From the NCBI GenBank assembly GCA_964247055.1, contig OZ176055.1, positions 4,092,001 to 4,156,000 on the forward strand: DNA of 64,000 nucleotides. The letters are read 5' to 3'. This DNA is from Paragordius varius (taxonomy: Eukaryota > Animalia > Nematomorpha). The notes beneath the pieces are model-generated. The model had not been told where the DNA came from. It worked only from the letters and a program-made list of their open reading frames with translations, and searched no databases. A program made the translations under genes and the position numbers. Below, piece by piece: positions 16,938 through 47,497 of the stretch. The first letter of the stretch is position 1; every line of letters begins with the position of its first letter.

Positions 16938-19900
16938 ATGAGTGCTGTTGAATTTAACATAAGAAAACCTCTAACCCACAATCATAACAATAATAATAGC
17001 AATCATAATTTTCGCATTAATAAATCTTCTCAAATAATGAAAAATGTTACAAAATGCCAAAGCCTTGTGGATGAAAATTTTCATGGAAAACCTGTAAAAC
17101 ACAAAAATTTTAGTAATAGCAATCCTTATCGTAATAACATTAATAATGTTCAAATACCAAACGCGCAAATGAACTTTATTACACCTAAAAGAGCGGAAAT
17201 CAATCCCCATACTATGCGGTATCAGGATGATCAAAGAACATTTATAACTAACAATACAAGTTATTGCAACTATGATGATTGGGTGGATAATACCGCTGTA
17301 AATAATTACCCAATCATAAAACAAAAAATGGATAATTTACAGGAACAATCAATCAACACAGTTTTTCGGAATCGGCGGGATAATCAAAATAGCGTTCATC
17401 CCATGACAACTTTACAAAGTCAAGAAACTTGGCCAGTCAAAACCACGCACGAAGAAAGACATAAAAAAGGTGTATCATTTTGTTCCTATTACATTTTATT
17501 CAAGATTTTAAAATTTATTATCCGGAAAATATTTGTCTTAGCCATCATACTCTCGTCTATTCTAAGTCCTCCCTTTTTATTAACTATCCCACGAAACATT
17601 GCGAAAACGCATCTCATTCATTTGGAGGATACTGCTTATAAGCCACAAAGTATCGATATTTTATCGCAAATAGAAATTCATCAATCAATAACAAATGAAT
17701 CTGAGCCCATGTTACCCAACTTAATTAGCAACCAACGAAAAATTAGATCTTCTTCCGGTCGTATCGATGCGAACAATTATTTACAAAATGAATACATGGC
17801 CAAACTTCTGGCCAAAAATGGTTTTAAAGATTTATTGAATTTACAGGCCATAAAAATTAATCGTACCCAAAGGCCAGGCCGTGCGGAACATAAAAAGCAA
17901 AAAGAATTGTACAAATATTTAATGTTACATCATAAAATGTGCACATATAATGGTAAACGCTATTGGAAATCTAATTTATGCCACATGCTTCAACAGTGTA
18001 ATTTGTCATGTCAAATCGAAGTTTTTATAACAATTGGTATTGCTTTGGTTAACTTGATTTTTATGTGGGGCATTTATTGTCATTTTGTACACCGACAAAG
18101 GATAAATACATTTTCACCCTCTTCATATGCAAACTCATTTAGAAAGTTATTTAATTACTTAAGTACAAGTTCATATCAGCGACTATCGAATCAATACGAA
18201 TCCGACCATTCATCGAGTTTTGTTTTATCGAAAATTTGGCATTTTTATTTAATTCTGCTGTTGTGTTACGTATTAATCGCATGGATGTTGTTTGGAATCA
18301 AAATACTGATCCCATTAACGCTGGAAACACCTATTGCCATTAACGCCAAAAATTATACAGCAATTTCTAACCAATTTCAAAGCTATAATAGCATAAATAC
18401 AAATGATGGGGAAAATTTTATATTTTCCTACCATGATGTTATCGCGTTTGTTAAATCCTATGTTCATTTTCTATTTCTTTCCCTTGTAATTTTAGCCTTA
18501 ACCATGTTTCTTAAACGGTCAAAGGGCGTTTTCGATGAGCCAGAAAAAGCGTTTTCGGCTCGTTGTATTCGCTCGAACGATGGGAAAAGTTATACGTACA
18601 GAATATCAGGTTCCTTAACTATTGAAGACGCTGCTAAACATATATTATCGCGATATTACATAGATTTTCCTTATTATGATCCGTACTTTGTGTATGATAT
18701 GCATTCAACCACCAGTTCCATGCAGAAAAACCAATCGCCAAATAATGAATCTGAACCACCACACTCTAGGGTCATTACTGTATCTGAGAGGAATGGGTGT
18801 AATAAAATTGTTGGATTCTCGGTCGCTCAGCAGCACGGGAAATCTTCGGCATCAGAAATTATTGCGCCATCAAAACGAACCGTTGTGAATGAACGGCCTT
18901 TCAAGAAAATGACTAATTTAAACGGTCATTCCCAACATCAAAGGGGAATTGAATGCCCCACCTCTCAAATTGTAAACGCTGAACCCGTTAGAACTAACCA
19001 AAGATTTTATGAGCTGGAAGATCACGAATCCAAGGTCAAGAAAAGGCAATGCCGATTGGTGCTGGCTATAGAGGAGGCTTTTGATGTAGTACAAACTATG
19101 CATGATGAAGAGAGTGGATGTAATTATATTCAAGGTAAAAATTTTACTGTTAGAACTTTTTATCCGGTTATACATAAATTTATAAAATTTAACTGAAAAA
19201 TTGCCTAAATTTTCTATCCAAAAGATGCCTGCCATTAAATTTTCTTCTCGACCATACTTTTTAAAAAATTAAGTATATCTAAATAAATATATATAAAATT
19301 TTGAAGTTTTTACCTAAACTTTACATATAAACGCTAATCGGCATTCAGATTCGTCGAACGTTATATAAACGAAATAACTGAAAGAATGCACCAAATAACT
19401 GTGTTTTAATTTAAATTTAAAATATGGTTTAACAAAAAAAACATCCTATATCTATTTGAATAAAAAATATCTCCAATGTTAAAATATTTTTTATATTTCT
19501 CCCCATATTAATGCTAAAATTCAGTAATTTAAATAGCCCTAAATATTTAGTAACATTTTATAATTTATTAAAAAAAATTCAATAATTATACCCCTACGTG
19601 ATCATCACGACAACAATAAACTTTTAAAGATATGATTAAAAAAATCAGTAAATATCGAAATATGATTTAATTTTAAAATTTTGACATACCTTTTTCGATA
19701 TAGTTACGTACTATCTAAAATACCGCTGCATGTATATATTGGATATATAAACTAAAAAATCTGACTGTTAATCTATTTTTATTGGATAGAAATTCAGAAA
19801 TTTTGTCTCATTAGATTTTTGCCTTTGTTATTTAGGATTATATCATTAAATATTGTCGTTTTTTAATTTTAGGCATGGAGGAAAGCAAATTTATATTAAA

Positions 19901-20981
19901 CAAAAGGTGCTTACAATTTAAATCTAAATGGTATAAGGGTAAAAAACCTCGGTAACTCTCTTTCCCTTAAACAATGTCAGTTTTTCAACTTTTGTTATTA
20001 TCATCAATCTTCATCAGGGTACTCAATGACGAGTGTCAGATTTATTTTTTCTTCCATGTGTTGCGGTTGTAGGCCTCCTTGATATCAATTTTCGTTCATA
20101 TTGATCTTATGTGATTGTTTTGTGCCATGTTAAAAGGGACGACCTGGTAGATCTATTTATGATGCTGCATTTTTCAAAATATTATCATCATCTTTTCGCT
20201 CAATGTATCCTAACAAGCTTAGTCTTTTGGTTTGGATTATATGATCAATTGGATCTATTTGAATTGAGTGGGCATCAAAATTACTGTTCAAATTATATTT
20301 AGTTGGGTTTAATGCATAAAGGATTGTCTTGAGAATTTTATTTACTGTTCGTAAGATTTTGTTATTAATAAAAATACTATTATTATTCAATTAAAAATTA
20401 ATTTAGAAAACAATCAAATGGATAAATCTGGTAGCGATCAACCCCTAATCACGTGCATAACAGTTGAGGAAGCCGCACAAACCATTTTCCCAATCATGTT
20501 AAAGCATTTACATAAATTGTTGAAGTTGACGCGACAACAACCCTTTTACAATCTCAAAGTTATTTTGACACACTTGACGAATTGTATTAAATACGATATG
20601 GGACCTTACGCTTTTGCAAAACTATTTTTAGATCCCGTTCCTCAACTCCACAACGAACGAGTGGCAAAATTATCGCTAAACGCAACACCTAAAACCGTAG
20701 GAACCGGCAAAAACGATTATGATTTTTCAATACATGAATGGATCATAATTTGTAGTGATAATTACATAAAAAGAAACGAAGATAGAAACAATGAAAACCA
20801 AAAAAATGTTGGGAAAATGCATAGTCGCATTGTGGATGGAACCTTATTCCAACTGAGAAGGGGTAACATTAAATTGCTGATTGAATTGAAGGAAATACCG
20901 ATTGTATGTTTGCAAGAACACATTTTAAATCCTCACAGAGAAAAATACTATAGTAAAACGGATGCTCGGGACATTGTTTAA
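16938..20981 (+). CDS. Vang: Vang-like/strabismus planar-cell-polarity protein, enlarged (~923 aa)
   Basis: Exons 16938-19134 (donor CAAG|GTAAAA) and 20407-20981, phase 1. Four hydrophobic segments and Vang motifs: IRSNDGKSYTY, RYYIDFPYYDP, RFYELEDHESKVKKRQCRLVLAIEEAF, EAAQTIFP..LTRQQPFY..ILTHL..CIKYDM. Confidence 0.88.
19995..20290 (-). mobile_element. 3' remnant of a non-LTR retrotransposon (RTE-like), antisense in the Vang intron
   Basis: Minus strand reads KRLSLLGYIERKDDDNILK...PGRP...NRNTWKKKI with stops, resembling the RL.W.GHV.R...GRP..RW..A.DR..W end of RTE ORFs. A short GAT/AAT-like tail follows. Confidence 0.55.
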
Positions 20982-43700: not shown

Positions 43701-44864
43701 TCTTTCGGCATTTTTCGCAGCGGCCCTCAAAAGCGTCACACCCCCAATATCAATATTTTCTATGGCATCCTCAAAACTTATATCATCAATATTTTGCGTG
43801 ACTTGAGTGAAGGGATATAAATTGCATATGACAAGGCTATATAAGTATAGCGATATATTTATAATAAATGAAAATATTTTTCCTGTCCCAATTGTCTTAA
43901 TACTCAAAAATTAATGTCTATGACTTATTTGAAAATATTTTTACACCAAATAAGTATATCAAATATTTTAAGAAATATATCAGGGTCATAAAAAAAATTT
44001 AGGGACACGGTTTAAATATCACTGATTCAGACTATACTTCTGTCATATAATAGATAAAATGAAAATAAACAGATTATAAAAATATTGTGATTAAAATAGT
44101 TCACCATGCATCATATTCGTTTAATTTGTTATTGTAATATCCATTTCCTGGTTTATTTAAAAAAAATATAAATTAAACTTAGCATTATAGTTTATATCGA
44201 TTATAAATTGTATTGGAAAGGAAACGTTATTAGAGAATCGGAATCTAAAAAATTTATTGGAAAATTTTTTTCAATTAGTGATACATTGATAACCATCTTT
44301 ATTGTTTGCAGGTTTATTTATGGGTTTTTTAACATTTATAAAAGTAGAATCAACTGGTTGATATATTTTTTGTGGTTAATTATTACTTTGTATCGTAAAA
44401 TAGATATCCTGATTTTAAATAATATAACCAAAATTAGAACAATACCGAATTGGAAACGGAAACAAACATATTTAAAATTAAAACCATTAGGTGTAATCCG
44501 TTAATAAGTAGATTTTTAACCAAAAATAATCCCGGTAAAACTTTGTTAAAAATAGCTTACTCAATTTTTTCAAAATTAAAATCAGCCAAATCTTTGTCAT
44601 CATCTTTGTTGTTGTTTCTGGCAAGTATACCGGCATATATGGCTGGATGTAAGGTTTTTACTCTGCCACCCAATATTTCCACAAAACCGGTATATTTTGA
44701 AATATTAGTGACGGGTATACCTAAGTTTTCGATGTATTTGGAAGTATTGCCAGAAGCGATTAATTCATATTGCTTTGAAGATAAAAATTTAACAATTTTA
44801 TCGAGATATGTTTTATCAGATACACTAATAATTGCTAAATTTATAATCAATTAAAACCTCTCAT
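37764..44864 (-). CDS. ATIC: Bifunctional AICAR transformylase/IMP cyclohydrolase
   Basis: Exons 44864-44858, 44834-44561, 43836-43599, 42961-42772, 42399-42223, ~41750-41568, 41273-41188, 40998-40909, 40575-40441, 40149-39983, 39069-38949, 38387-38292, 37883-37764. A small exon between 38388 and 38948 may be missing. Motifs [78 protein letters not shown]. Confidence 0.95.
39546..39941. mobile_element. MITE, TACCATTT family (short type), copy 4
   Basis: TA|TACCATTTACAGTTC...GAACTGTAAATGGTA|TA with about five 21-bp units per arm. Lies in an ATIC intron. Confidence 0.9.
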
Positions 44865-44936
44865 TTTCAGCGTGGTTTTCTTCAACCGAGTTTACAATAG
44901 TGTTTTTAATGTTGGATTAAAAAAAATTAAATATTT
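44865..44936. promoter_or_regulatory. Putative bidirectional promoter region between ATIC and MED10
   Basis: Only 72 nt separate the divergent ATGs at 44864 (-) and 44937 (+). Confidence 0.55.
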
Positions 44937-45465
44937 ATGATGGAAGAAACTCTTTCTCGGACCAAATATGACTCATTAAGTAAACGACTAGAAGAACTTA
45001 TAGAGCATTTTAGACTAATTGAAATAATGGTTAGCGATTTTCAGCCACAAAGCCAAGTTGCGTTTAACCAGCAAATGTAATACTTATTTTTCTTTTTTAA
45101 AATAAATCATATATCATTTTTTTCTTTTAGAAATTCTGTCATTGAAAATTTACAAGAAATTCAAAATATTAAGCTCGATCTACCAGATATTCAAATCCCA
45201 TTCGATCTAATTGAGTATTATATGTTAATATTCCAGATTTATTGATAAAGATTTAACCACTGAAATATATATGAAAGATAATATGGATAAATGTATATTT
45301 AAGAATGAGGAGTCAAAAAAACGAGTTGAAACCTTTCAGGTTTTTTGAACATTTTAATTTCAGAAATTCAAAACTTTATTGACATCCGAAATATCCAATA
45401 TTTATCCGACTGATATAACGAAATACAACATATTACGCAGTGAAGATACAACATTTGAAATTTGA
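44937..45465 (+). CDS. MED10: Mediator complex subunit 10
   Basis: Not in the ORF track. Exons 44937-45076, 45131-45214, 45237-45339, 45364-45465 give ..LEELIEHFRLIEIMVSDFQPQSQVAFNQQINSVIENLQEI..IQIPFDLIEFIDKD..KNEESKKRVETFQKFKTLLTSEISNIYPTDITKYNILRSED.., colinear with human MED10. Confidence 0.9.
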
Positions 45466-45471
45466 ATTGTC

Positions 45472-47076
45472 ATGTCCATGTTTATTAAGGATAAATTAAA
45501 GACATTTTTAAATGTAAAATATTTAAGTATTATCGAGGATTATACCCGCACTCATTACATTTTGTTTGGTCATGAAATGGTTAAAATGCTCGTAACTACC
45601 CTTAATTTTTTGAAAAAAATATATTCTTTATCATATTTTTCAAAGTGTCGTTTCTCCGAAAATTTATCAACTTTTTGTTGGTTATCTATTCTTGATGATC
45701 TTTGGTGTAAATTTGAATATTTGAGTGATTTTGTTTGGGAACAGTTGAATACGGGTTTATGGAAAGATGTAAATCAATGTTGGCGTTATATGTATGCCCA
45801 TCTAAATTATTGCAAAATAATTATTATTATCTCAATTTTCGAAGGGTTAGGAGATTATACATCAATTTCAGTTTTGAAAAATATTAAATACATCAAACAT
45901 ATAACAAAAAGTATTGAAGCACTTTTGATCAAATATGAGCCAGTATGTGAAAGTTATGAATCTAATATATTCCCATATTATCTTGTATGTTTGTGTGATC
46001 TTTCAATACTTTCTGGATTACCGGATACTTTGCCTTTCAATGCTAACGACGGGTCCAACACTTTAAAAATGTATGAAGAAGATATGTTTAATAGTAATAA
46101 CCATTCTACTACTATTTTCCACTATATTGCCCAAGTCTGTACTCATTATTTGACAGGGCAGTTATTGTATGCCAATTTCTCCGATAGTTTACAGAGAGGA
46201 TTTGATAAAATCTTGCACTCAAATGAAGCATCGATTAACGATTTCAACTTGCGATATCCACTTCACGAATATGTTTGTCCTACATTGAGTTTTTTTAGTT
46301 CCCTGGTCCAATTAAAACAACCCTTTGTAATTAGTGATGCACTAAACATAGACGAGTGGCCTTGTATACCATCTTTTAATAAGGCGAAATCTTGGAAAAA
46401 CCTACGTTATTTATTAAGTGTTTGTGGACCTCGTTTAATACCCGTTGAAATTGGTAGTAAATACACTGATGTACAATGGAAACAATGTTTAATGCCCTTT
46501 GATAGATTCGTTAATGATTATTTGATTGGATCGAACCCGCTAAATAAAAGTAATGTTTTGGTATCTAATACACAACTTTCGACGCCCAAAGGATATTTAG
46601 CTCAGCACTTTCTTTTTGATCAGATACCTGAATTAATGCAAGATTTTGAAATCCCAATATACTGTTATGTGAATATTGACAACAATAATATCTTAACATA
46701 CTCTGATGAATCGTCTAACTCATGTGATGACGTTGAAATTAATTGCTGGTTTGGTCCAAGCCAAACTGTATCACCCCTACACACTGACCCTAAACCTAAT
46801 TTACTTTGTCAAGTTTTTGGGTGCAAATACGTTAGACTCTATGATCCTATTTATTCCGATCGCTTATATGCTTATGAAAAGAGTCATCTCCTCTCTAACA
46901 ATACAAGTCCAATTGACGTTGAACACCCGGATTATGAACGTTTTCCCAATTTCCTAAATGTACCTTACAGTGAATGCATATTGCGAAGTGGCGAAATGTT
47001 ATACATACCACCGGGATATTGGCACTACGTTAGATCGTTGGAACCGACTTTTTCCATCAATTTTTGGTGGCAATGA
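45472..47076 (+). CDS. KDM8: JmjC-domain hydroxylase JMJD5/KDM8, intronless, 534 aa
   Basis: VWEQLNTGLWKDV N-terminal motif, GPRLIPVEIGSKYT, GYLAQHFLFDQIPEL, HTD and WHYVRSL Fe(II) ligands, FSINFWW end. Confidence 0.93.
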   Translation: MSMFIKDKLKTFLNVKYLSIIEDYTRTHYILFGHEMVKMLVTTLNFLKKIYSLSYFSKCRFSENLSTFCWLSILDDLWCKFEYLSDFVWEQLNTGLWKDVNQCWRYMYAHLNYCKIIIIISIFEGLGDYTSISVLKNIKYIKHITKSIEALLIKYEPVCESYESNIFPYYLVCLCDLSILSGLPDTLPFNANDGSNTLKMYEEDMFNSNNHSTTIFHYIAQVCTHYLTGQLLYANFSDSLQRGFDKILHSNEASINDFNLRYPLHEYVCPTLSFFSSLVQLKQPFVISDALNIDEWPCIPSFNKAKSWKNLRYLLSVCGPRLIPVEIGSKYTDVQWKQCLMPFDRFVNDYLIGSNPLNKSNVLVSNTQLSTPKGYLAQHFLFDQIPELMQDFEIPIYCYVNIDNNNILTYSDESSNSCDDVEINCWFGPSQTVSPLHTDPKPNLLCQVFGCKYVRLYDPIYSDRLYAYEKSHLLSNNTSPIDVEHPDYERFPNFLNVPYSECILRSGEMLYIPPGYWHYVRSLEPTFSINFWWQ

Positions 47077-47497
47077 AAAAAAAATGTTTTATATTTTATA
47101 TCTATTTTATTTGTGATATATTGTAAAATAAATCGTACCTTTCCTTAAATTTTTGATGAATAAGGCTAAAAATTAGGTCATCCTATAGTAAACATTCCCC
47201 TAAACCAAACTATATTTAGTAAATAAAGAGTCATTTTTAGAGCATTGATTTACGATTGGCAATTACATAGCATTTATTTTACTTAGGTACTTCAAAAATA
47301 GCTATTCAAATTTTTGCTAGTAACTTGTGTAAATAAATATGGCAATCAAATGTTGAAAAAAATACTATTATATGCCCTAAATAACAACCCACTTAAAAAG
47401 TGTATCAAACTCTTCTAATTATCGCTGAATCATAGGCTCATATAAAAATATTAGGATGATTCAAAGAAATTAAAATTTATCTTTTGGGAAAACTAAA

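Follow-up and report, generated by a model that had tools for sequence, protein, structure and literature searches.

Closely packed, same-strand gene pairs with shared transcripts have been described in several systems, and the nearest match to the locus considered here is provided by the dicistronic loci of Drosophila, where 159 pairs are on record, 45 of which also give monocistronic mRNAs for both genes (PMC4528330). Of the stop codons with functional readthrough in Drosophila, 97% are perfectly conserved, the rare swaps being confined to exchanges of UAA and UAG (PMC4528330). Termination-reinitiation following long open reading frames (ORFs) typically involves a stop and a start within 20 nucleotides (nt) of each other (PMC10275272), and green-algal bicistronic loci use leaky scanning, with a weak Kozak context at the first ORF and depletion of AUGs ahead of the second (PMC7896298, PMC11291117). 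Here we describe the genes MED10 and JMJD5/KDM8 in a 64,000-nt stretch of the horsehair worm Paragordius varius (Nematomorpha; assembly GCA_964247055.1, contig OZ176055.1, forward-strand positions 4,092,001 to 4,156,000; hereafter the window, in whose own coordinates positions are given), where 6 nt separate the stop codon of the first gene from a start codon of the second.

Judged from gene structure and comparison, hairworm MED10 and JMJD5 very probably make up a two-gene unit that has been conserved and would encode two full-length proteins, made separately and without fusion from transcripts that are shared or overlap, because both genes are complete and abut each other with no space for a 3′-end signal and a promoter. 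The feature of note is this close abutment, at 6 nt, of two genes that are each complete and present as a single copy; the shared reading frame taken alone is a 1-in-3 chance. The kind of arrangement is already known from the Drosophila dicistronic pairs (FlyBase ‘gene_with_dicistronic_mRNA’), which likewise combine unrelated, separately conserved same-strand genes, a small upstream partner and no space for independent signals. Alternative monocistronic mRNAs of one partner are likely in either case. What sets the hairworm case apart is the persistent closeness of start and upstream stop in two very divergent species and in several pairs of the P. varius genome. Unlike the Drosophila pairs, the unit is predicted from gene structure, and its spacer, 6 nt in one species and 12 nt in the other, is extreme and has been kept across a deep split in the phylum. 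Such units are not mentioned in two hairworm genome papers.

The MED10–JMJD5 junction

MED10 lies on the plus strand and comprises 429 nt of coding sequence (142 codons) in four exons, which were identified by exon-by-exon similarity searches and compared with those of another horsehair worm, Gordionus sp., in a 21-kb locus (L032) taken from GCA_954871325.2 (OX940787.2). The junction region there, L032:9200–10010, equals ~13,853,400–13,854,200 of OX940787.2, on the minus strand of that record. Exon 1 (44937–45076) opens with ATG ATG, ends in phase 2, matches positions 2–32 of the Pfam Med10 profile and is 60.5% identical to its Gordionus counterpart (L032:9333–9446). It is followed by a 54-nt GT..AG intron (45077–45130) and by exon 2 (45131–45214), which matches profile positions 35–61. 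Together, the first two exons account for positions 2–61 of the profile (PF09748), and the genome search placed this match at 27.5 bits, above the cut-off. A 22-nt micro-intron (45215–45236; GTATTA..CCAG) is required to keep the frame into exon 3 (45237–45339), which pairs with human MED10 residues 70–102 and is 64.7% identical to L032:9615–9716. A second micro-intron of 24 nt (45340–45363; GTTTTT..TCAG) precedes exon 4 (45364–45465), which begins KFKTLLTSEISNIYPTDITKYNILRSED, contains no ATG, is 63% identical to L032:9779–9859 and pairs with human residues 104–131 of 135 (E=6e-4). All three genuine acceptors read CAG or TAG.

The 3′ end of MED10 reads GAA ATT TGA (45457–45465). Since exon 4 reaches residue 131 of the 135 in human MED10, the TGA at 45463–45465 marks the natural C-terminus, and the matches spread along the whole length of the protein identify the gene as MED10 on sequence grounds. 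Gordionus carries introns at the same three positions, of 42, 39 and 47 nt. The two micro-introns of the window thus correspond in position to introns of ordinary length in Gordionus (L032:9575–9613, 39 nt, and L032:9717–9763, 47 nt), which suggests that they arose by shrinkage in the lineage of the window.

JMJD5 occupies a single exon on the same strand (45472–47076; 534 codons plus a TGA at 47074–47076) and opens ATG TCC ATG; the 9 nt between positions 45463 and 45472 place it in the MED10 frame. Its product carries a Cupin_8 domain (7.5e-39), a JmjC_2 domain (1.5e-8) and a weak match to the N-terminal helical domain ARM_KDM8_N, and the iron-binding HxD...H residues (H437, D439 and H518) are invariant in the alignment of homologues. 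The best matches of the ORF are all named JMJD5/KDM8, and fold, iron triad and KDM8-type N-terminal domain together assign it to this family; by the same residues, the enzyme is predicted to be catalytically intact. In searches of the whole assembly (110.6 Mb, 44 contigs), MED10 and JMJD5 each proved to be single-copy. A whole-protein search returned distant JMJD5 proteins only, and a search with the catalytic half ranked a partial Gordionus protein first (295 bits, 51% identity; runner-up 248 bits). In the JMJD5 tree the window protein sits on a poorly resolved long branch near a nematode, a placement that may reflect long-branch attraction.

One top match, a 905-residue protein of the mite Medioppia subpectinata, proved to be two tandem JMJD5 copies merged in one gene model. 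The Pfam QCR9 match in that model is spurious; it covers the WE.LN.G.W motif, a conserved feature of the N-terminal domain of JMJD5.

Between the two genes lies the spacer ATTGTC (45466–45471), which contains neither an AG nor a processing signal. The window as a whole is ~27% G+C. Neither AATAAA nor ATTAAA occurs in MED10 exon 4 or the spacer (45364–45471). An ATTAAA at 45495–45500 is a candidate poly(A) signal of MED10, located 30 nt past its stop and inside JMJD5 codons 8–10. An AATAAA at 47127–47132, 51 nt past the JMJD5 stop, is the candidate poly(A) signal for JMJD5 as well as for a dicistronic mRNA, should one be made; its Gordionus counterpart lies 12 nt past the stop. The locus thus comprises two complete same-strand coding sequences with no space for signals of their own between them. 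Several observations of a preliminary description of this locus held when the sequence was read again, namely the TGA at 45463–45465 followed after 6 nt by the same-frame 534-codon ORF at ATG 45472, the missing AG between stop and start, the lack of room for a poly(A) signal or promoter, and the intronless state of JMJD5.

The pair in Gordionus and the start of JMJD5

In Gordionus, a 143-residue Med10 gene lies directly 5′ of a single-exon JMJD5 gene on the same strand. Its coding sequence ends ...SEDTTFQP TAA (L032:9863–9865), and after a spacer of 12 nt (TTTTTTTTAATA) the ATG at L032:9878 opens a JMJD5 ORF of 528 codons that, as in the window, shares the frame of MED10. Between the two species, MED10 exons are 60–65% identical, and the RefSeq Gordionus JMJD5 protein (487 residues) shares 38% identity with the ORF of the window (E=1e-110). 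The flanks differ: when 30 kb of the window were compared, as 121 further ORF pieces, with the 21-kb Gordionus locus, the sole additional match was marginal (E=5.6e-4). MED10 was not found beside JMJD5 in four other organisms, the nematode Soboliphyme among them (no match at E<0.5). The pair, and only the pair, thus appears to have been kept together within hairworms while its surroundings changed. Because JMJD5 is intronless and stands behind MED10 in Gordionus too, any retroposition of JMJD5 must be ancient; single-ORF JMJD5 genes are present in unrelated genomic contigs as well.

For the start of JMJD5 translation, both species offer two candidates, the first ATG beside the MED10 stop and a conserved internal methionine (Met36 of the window protein, ATG 45577–45579, in the sequence GHEM; GSEM in Gordionus). 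RefSeq placed the Gordionus start at the GSEM methionine, 41 codons past the first ATG and equivalent to Met36. The two public models of Gordionus JMJD5 seem truncated at their N-terminal end, with 267 residues in the submitter model and 487 in the RefSeq model, compared with the 528-codon frame (L032:9878–10000 for the part in question).

Several lines of evidence converge on the first ATG. The JMJD5 frame past the MED10 stop is free of stop codons in both species (0 of 37 codons in the window, 0 of 45 in Gordionus), while the other two frames hold 4 and 3 stops in the window and 7 and 6 in Gordionus. The empirical chance of such an open stretch is 0.12 in the window and 0.084 in Gordionus; as the N-terminal sequences have diverged past recognition, the two stretches are effectively independent, giving a joint chance of ~0.01. 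Codon usage is coding-like in the JMJD5 frame only (+6.4 bits in the window, +4.8 in Gordionus), with off-frames and non-coding controls scoring between –8.6 and –23.7 bits; the two off-frames of the 35 N-terminal codons of the window (45472–45576) stand at –23.1 and –15.1. This score partly overlaps with the lack of stops. In both species an ATG occurs within the first 3–5 codons of the open stretch, and in the alignment of JMJD5 homologues the residues preceding Met36 fall in the N-terminal helix region. A word search with the 163 N-terminal residues of JMJD5 recovered no relatives, and peptide similarity between the two hairworm extensions is powerless as a measure, the next 50 residues, which are certainly coding, likewise giving z~0. 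As both species are stop-free and coding-like in codon usage down to the conserved methionine, we conclude with considerable confidence that JMJD5 translation begins at the first ATG, 6 or 12 nt past the MED10 stop.

Possible transcripts and translation across the junction

Other tight pairs in the P. varius genome provide a frame of reference. The genes for a prefoldin (5.9e-12) and Vma12 (TMEM199; 1.3e-11) overlap as TAATG, a spacing of –1 nt. An ORF upstream of RCL1 ends in TAA and is followed by TT and the RCL1 ATG (2 nt), and an exon upstream of UTP6 ends TAATAA, followed by the UTP6 ATG at a spacing of 3 nt. Including MED10–JMJD5, the spacings are therefore –1, 2, 3 and 6 nt, with two of the four pairs in frame, which is the chance level; spacings of –1, 2 and 3 nt indicate that a shared frame is not a common property of tight pairs. 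In UTP6 itself, the N-terminal ORF (ATG at L007:1410; U3_assoc_6 profile positions 1–27) and the main 726-codon frame are offset by one base at ~1513–1516 (...ATA CAG A CGC CGT...). No obvious GT..AG intron accounts for this shift (L007:1410–1530), which could stem from an indel in the assembly or from unusual splicing.

With no AATAAA or ATTAAA in exon 4 or the spacer, every MED10 mRNA is expected to run into JMJD5, and with no space between the genes, every JMJD5 mRNA should begin within or 5′ of the MED10 coding sequence. In Gordionus, an ATTAAA stands 31 nt past the MED10 stop (L032:9896), compared with 30 nt in the window. Its distance from the JMJD5 ATG differs (23 nt in the window vs. 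18 nt), so that the hexamer looks placed relative to MED10. This arrangement suggests a MED10-only mRNA ending within the first ~25 codons of JMJD5.

For the expression of the pair we favor, at somewhat under an even chance, a dicistronic mRNA accompanied by MED10-only mRNAs, with termination-coupled reinitiation at the JMJD5 AUG. Transcription would start from the MED10 promoter; many transcripts would end ~15–25 nt past the conserved ATTAAA, 30–31 nt past the MED10 stop, and serve as MED10-only mRNA, and the remainder would extend to the AATAAA behind JMJD5 and thus be dicistronic. On the latter, ribosomes finishing at the MED10 stop would restart at the AUG a few bases 3′. We lean towards termination-reinitiation because start and upstream stop stay close together, in the two divergent species as well as in several pairs of the genome, at spacings within 20 nt throughout. 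The preliminary description had proposed either a bicistronic transcript or a fusion; the former fits the geometry of the locus and its conservation in Gordionus at 12 nt, and the latter found no support, as set out below.

Known cases of coupled translation share some of these traits. The TURBS (termination upstream ribosome-binding site) systems of caliciviruses and influenza B virus and the UAAUG of SART1 (PMC10275272) likewise have stop and start within 20 nt and an upstream ORF of more than 100 codons, and prefoldin–Vma12 shows the classic TAATG overlap. They differ in that the stop of MED10 is in frame with the start of JMJD5 and does not overlap it, that the hairworm locus lacks the 18S-complementary UGGGA motif and a structured element, and that its genes are cellular rather than viral or transposon-borne. 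The green-algal loci resemble the hairworm unit as nuclear polycistronic units kept between species with a short gap between ORFs (PMC7896298, PMC11291117). Unlike those loci, MED10 contains AUGs at chance level (8 vs. 7.5 ± 2.5 expected in the window, 9 vs. 8.0 ± 2.5 in Gordionus), and its second AUG has an A at –3 and a G at +4; leaky scanning of the green-algal type was rejected on account of the AUG counts in both species.

A number of points weigh against the two-gene unit and the coupled translation proposed for it. Eukaryotic ribosomes usually reinitiate poorly past an ORF of 142 codons. No TURBS-like UGGGA was found, TGGGA and GGGA being absent from the 120 nt upstream of all four junctions examined, and the RNA upstream of the MED10–JMJD5 junction shows no excess of structure (folding z=0.02). 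The shared ATTAAA was noticed post hoc, with a chance of roughly 1–5%. Furthermore, exact-protein look-ups with the window JMJD5, a Gordionus protein and the 528-residue Gordionus ORF gave no transcript contigs, the comparison covers two hairworm species only, and the RefSeq start of Gordionus JMJD5 at the downstream conserved methionine leaves a 135-nt gap to MED10. Finally, no AUG in any frame occurs in the 167 nt that precede the JMJD5 start at 45472, exon 4 included (p~0.045), which fits an mRNA starting inside MED10 equally well.

This last observation leads to the most serious alternative, a promoter nested in MED10 exon 3 or 4, from which JMJD5 would be transcribed with MED10 coding sequence as its 5′ untranslated region (UTR) and 45472 as its first AUG; MED10 mRNAs would end at the ATTAAA within JMJD5, and JMJD5 transcripts would skip that signal as too near the cap. 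We regard such a promoter as possible, though on the unlikely side. It would account for the AUG-free stretch and for the ordinary number of AUGs in MED10, past which scanning from the MED10 cap could not reach JMJD5; the conserved ATTAAA, 30–31 nt past the stop, suggests that most MED10 transcripts end there, and both genes are also transcribed singly in 45 of the 159 Drosophila loci (PMC4528330). However, the AUG-free stretch shrinks to 96 nt in Gordionus and to 11 nt before the start in prefoldin–Vma12, and a nested promoter leaves unexplained why the start lies at most 12 nt from the stop in two divergent species and at most 3 nt in the other pairs. With nearby intergenic distances of 70–400 bp, this tight spacing is not a matter of general compaction. 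Quite unlikely, in our view, is an arrangement of ordinary neighbors, in which the MED10 mRNA ends past the ATTAAA, the JMJD5 mRNA begins just 3′ of it, JMJD5 starts at Met36 (45577) and the frame upstream goes untranslated. The methionine of GHEM and GSEM is common to both species and was chosen by RefSeq, its ATG has a purine at –3 and a G at +4, and a start there would put the WE.LNTG motif ~51–63 residues away, as in other JMJD5 proteins. Against this stand the frame open for 37 and 45 codons to the MED10 stop, its coding-like codon usage, the early ATG and the alignment of the residues before Met36 with the homologue helix, all described above; moreover, the whole promoter and 5′ UTR would have to fit into the ~55 nt from the MED10 cleavage site to Met36.

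The preliminary description had raised a fusion that tethers JMJD5 to Mediator, either by readthrough of the UGA or by splicing of exon 3 to an AAG/GAT acceptor at 45489. The shared frame and the stop-free spacer of 6 and 12 nt in both species would permit it, readthrough is most frequent at UGA stops (PMC4528330), and the acceptor does exist and is in phase, exon 3 ending in phase 0 and position 45490 being a codon boundary. Yet this acceptor is a weak AAG, compared with the CAG or TAG of the genuine sites, and has no counterpart in Gordionus, where the first 70 nt of the JMJD5 ORF hold no AG. The synteny comparison suggested at the time confirmed pair and frame in Gordionus but found the stop replaced, TGA-A in the window vs. 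TAA-T in Gordionus, neither of them a leaky context such as UGA-C, so that a conserved leaky stop is lacking; nor does the RNA past the MED10 stop fold better than shuffled sequence (z=0.28). Retention of the frame is expected by descent, without an indel in a spacer of 6–12 nt, and hence amounts to a single 1-in-3 event, while prefoldin–Vma12 and RCL1 are tight pairs out of frame, and both proteins possess natural termini. We therefore rate a fusion as very unlikely; it may occur as a trace product and is unsupported as a function.

Operons are common in nematodes, to which hairworms are sister, and a nematode-style operon, with a polycistronic pre-mRNA resolved by spliced-leader (SL) trans-splicing just 5′ of JMJD5, had to be weighed as well. 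The hairworm pair shares with SL2- and SL1-type operons the close packing of same-strand housekeeping genes, and AG dinucleotides do occur 28 and 33 nt 5′ of the JMJD5 ATG. These lie inside MED10 codons, however, so that an acceptor there would fall in MED10 coding sequence and destroy the MED10 mRNA. Unlike in nematode operons, there is no intercistronic region and no acceptor before the downstream AUG, neither species having an AG or a 3′-end signal from the stop to the start. The searches revealed no SL RNA gene: the Rfam SL1 and SL2 models were unmatched in the genome, a weak negative given that 50 of ~37,000 candidates were scored and that a hairworm-specific leader would escape, and the sequences closest to the SL1 22-mer belong to a transposon-like repeat present in ~2,000 copies, in which the leader is not followed by a donor. 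Among the papers searched, none links Nematomorpha with trans-splicing, and we judge an operon of this type highly improbable. The SL1 22-mer search itself (≤3 mismatches) gave four matches vs. two for a reversed control, two of the four being copies of one dispersed repeat, and was dismissed as chance resemblance. The SL1-like sequence (GGTTTAATTACCCCAGTTTGAA) lies near one end of that repeat, whose ~2,000 copies are 85–91% identical (e.g. L016:1425–1560). Some copies are adjacent and inverted (e.g. C8:3529395–3529599), and the element looks like the end of a miniature inverted-repeat transposable element (MITE) or other transposon rather than an SL RNA gene.

Neighboring genes and implications of the pair

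Upstream of MED10, positions 44851–44936 form a divergent region, presumably a shared promoter, between the MED10 ATG and the first coding exon of ATIC/PurH on the minus strand (MGS domain, 1.6e-9, and AICARFT_IMPCHas). The ATIC/PurH ORF lacks an in-frame ATG. A candidate start is the minus-strand ATG at 44864–44862, which, combined with a 23-nt GT..AG micro-intron (44857–44835), would restore a typical ATIC N-terminus and place the divergent ATIC and MED10 start codons 72 bp apart. Elsewhere in the window, the plus-strand ORFs at 16938–19196 and 20418–20981 match the planar-polarity protein Strabismus/Van Gogh (3e-16 and 7e-22) and probably belong as exons to a single gene. The first ORF (752 codons) has a long N-terminal part without a Pfam match.

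For annotation, the pair shows that gene finders, RefSeq included, may split or trim such units: the RefSeq model of Gordionus JMJD5 is 41 codons short, and the submitter model covers half of the protein. As nothing supports a physical MED10–JMJD5 fusion, the locus should not serve as evidence that JmjC hydroxylation is linked to Mediator. It does provide a clean, conserved test case for the expression of a second full-length protein 6–12 nt past the stop of another gene, for which public stranded RNA-seq data of Gordionus montsenyensis exist (~127 M reads; bioRxiv 10.1101/2023.06.26.546503).

A broader proposal would be that horsehair worms maintain cellular pairs—MED10–JMJD5, prefoldin–TMEM199 and others—whose second protein is made by restart at most 12 nt from a stop, after ORFs of 100–140 codons and without a TURBS of the viral type. 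We consider this doubtful. If true, it would amount to phylum-wide, cellular coupled termination-reinitiation, an operon-like solution unlike the spliced-leader operons of the sister phylum, the nematodes. The MED10–JMJD5 pair is also relevant to the question of whether operon-like units that do without spliced leaders exist in the phylum closest to nematodes, their sister group.

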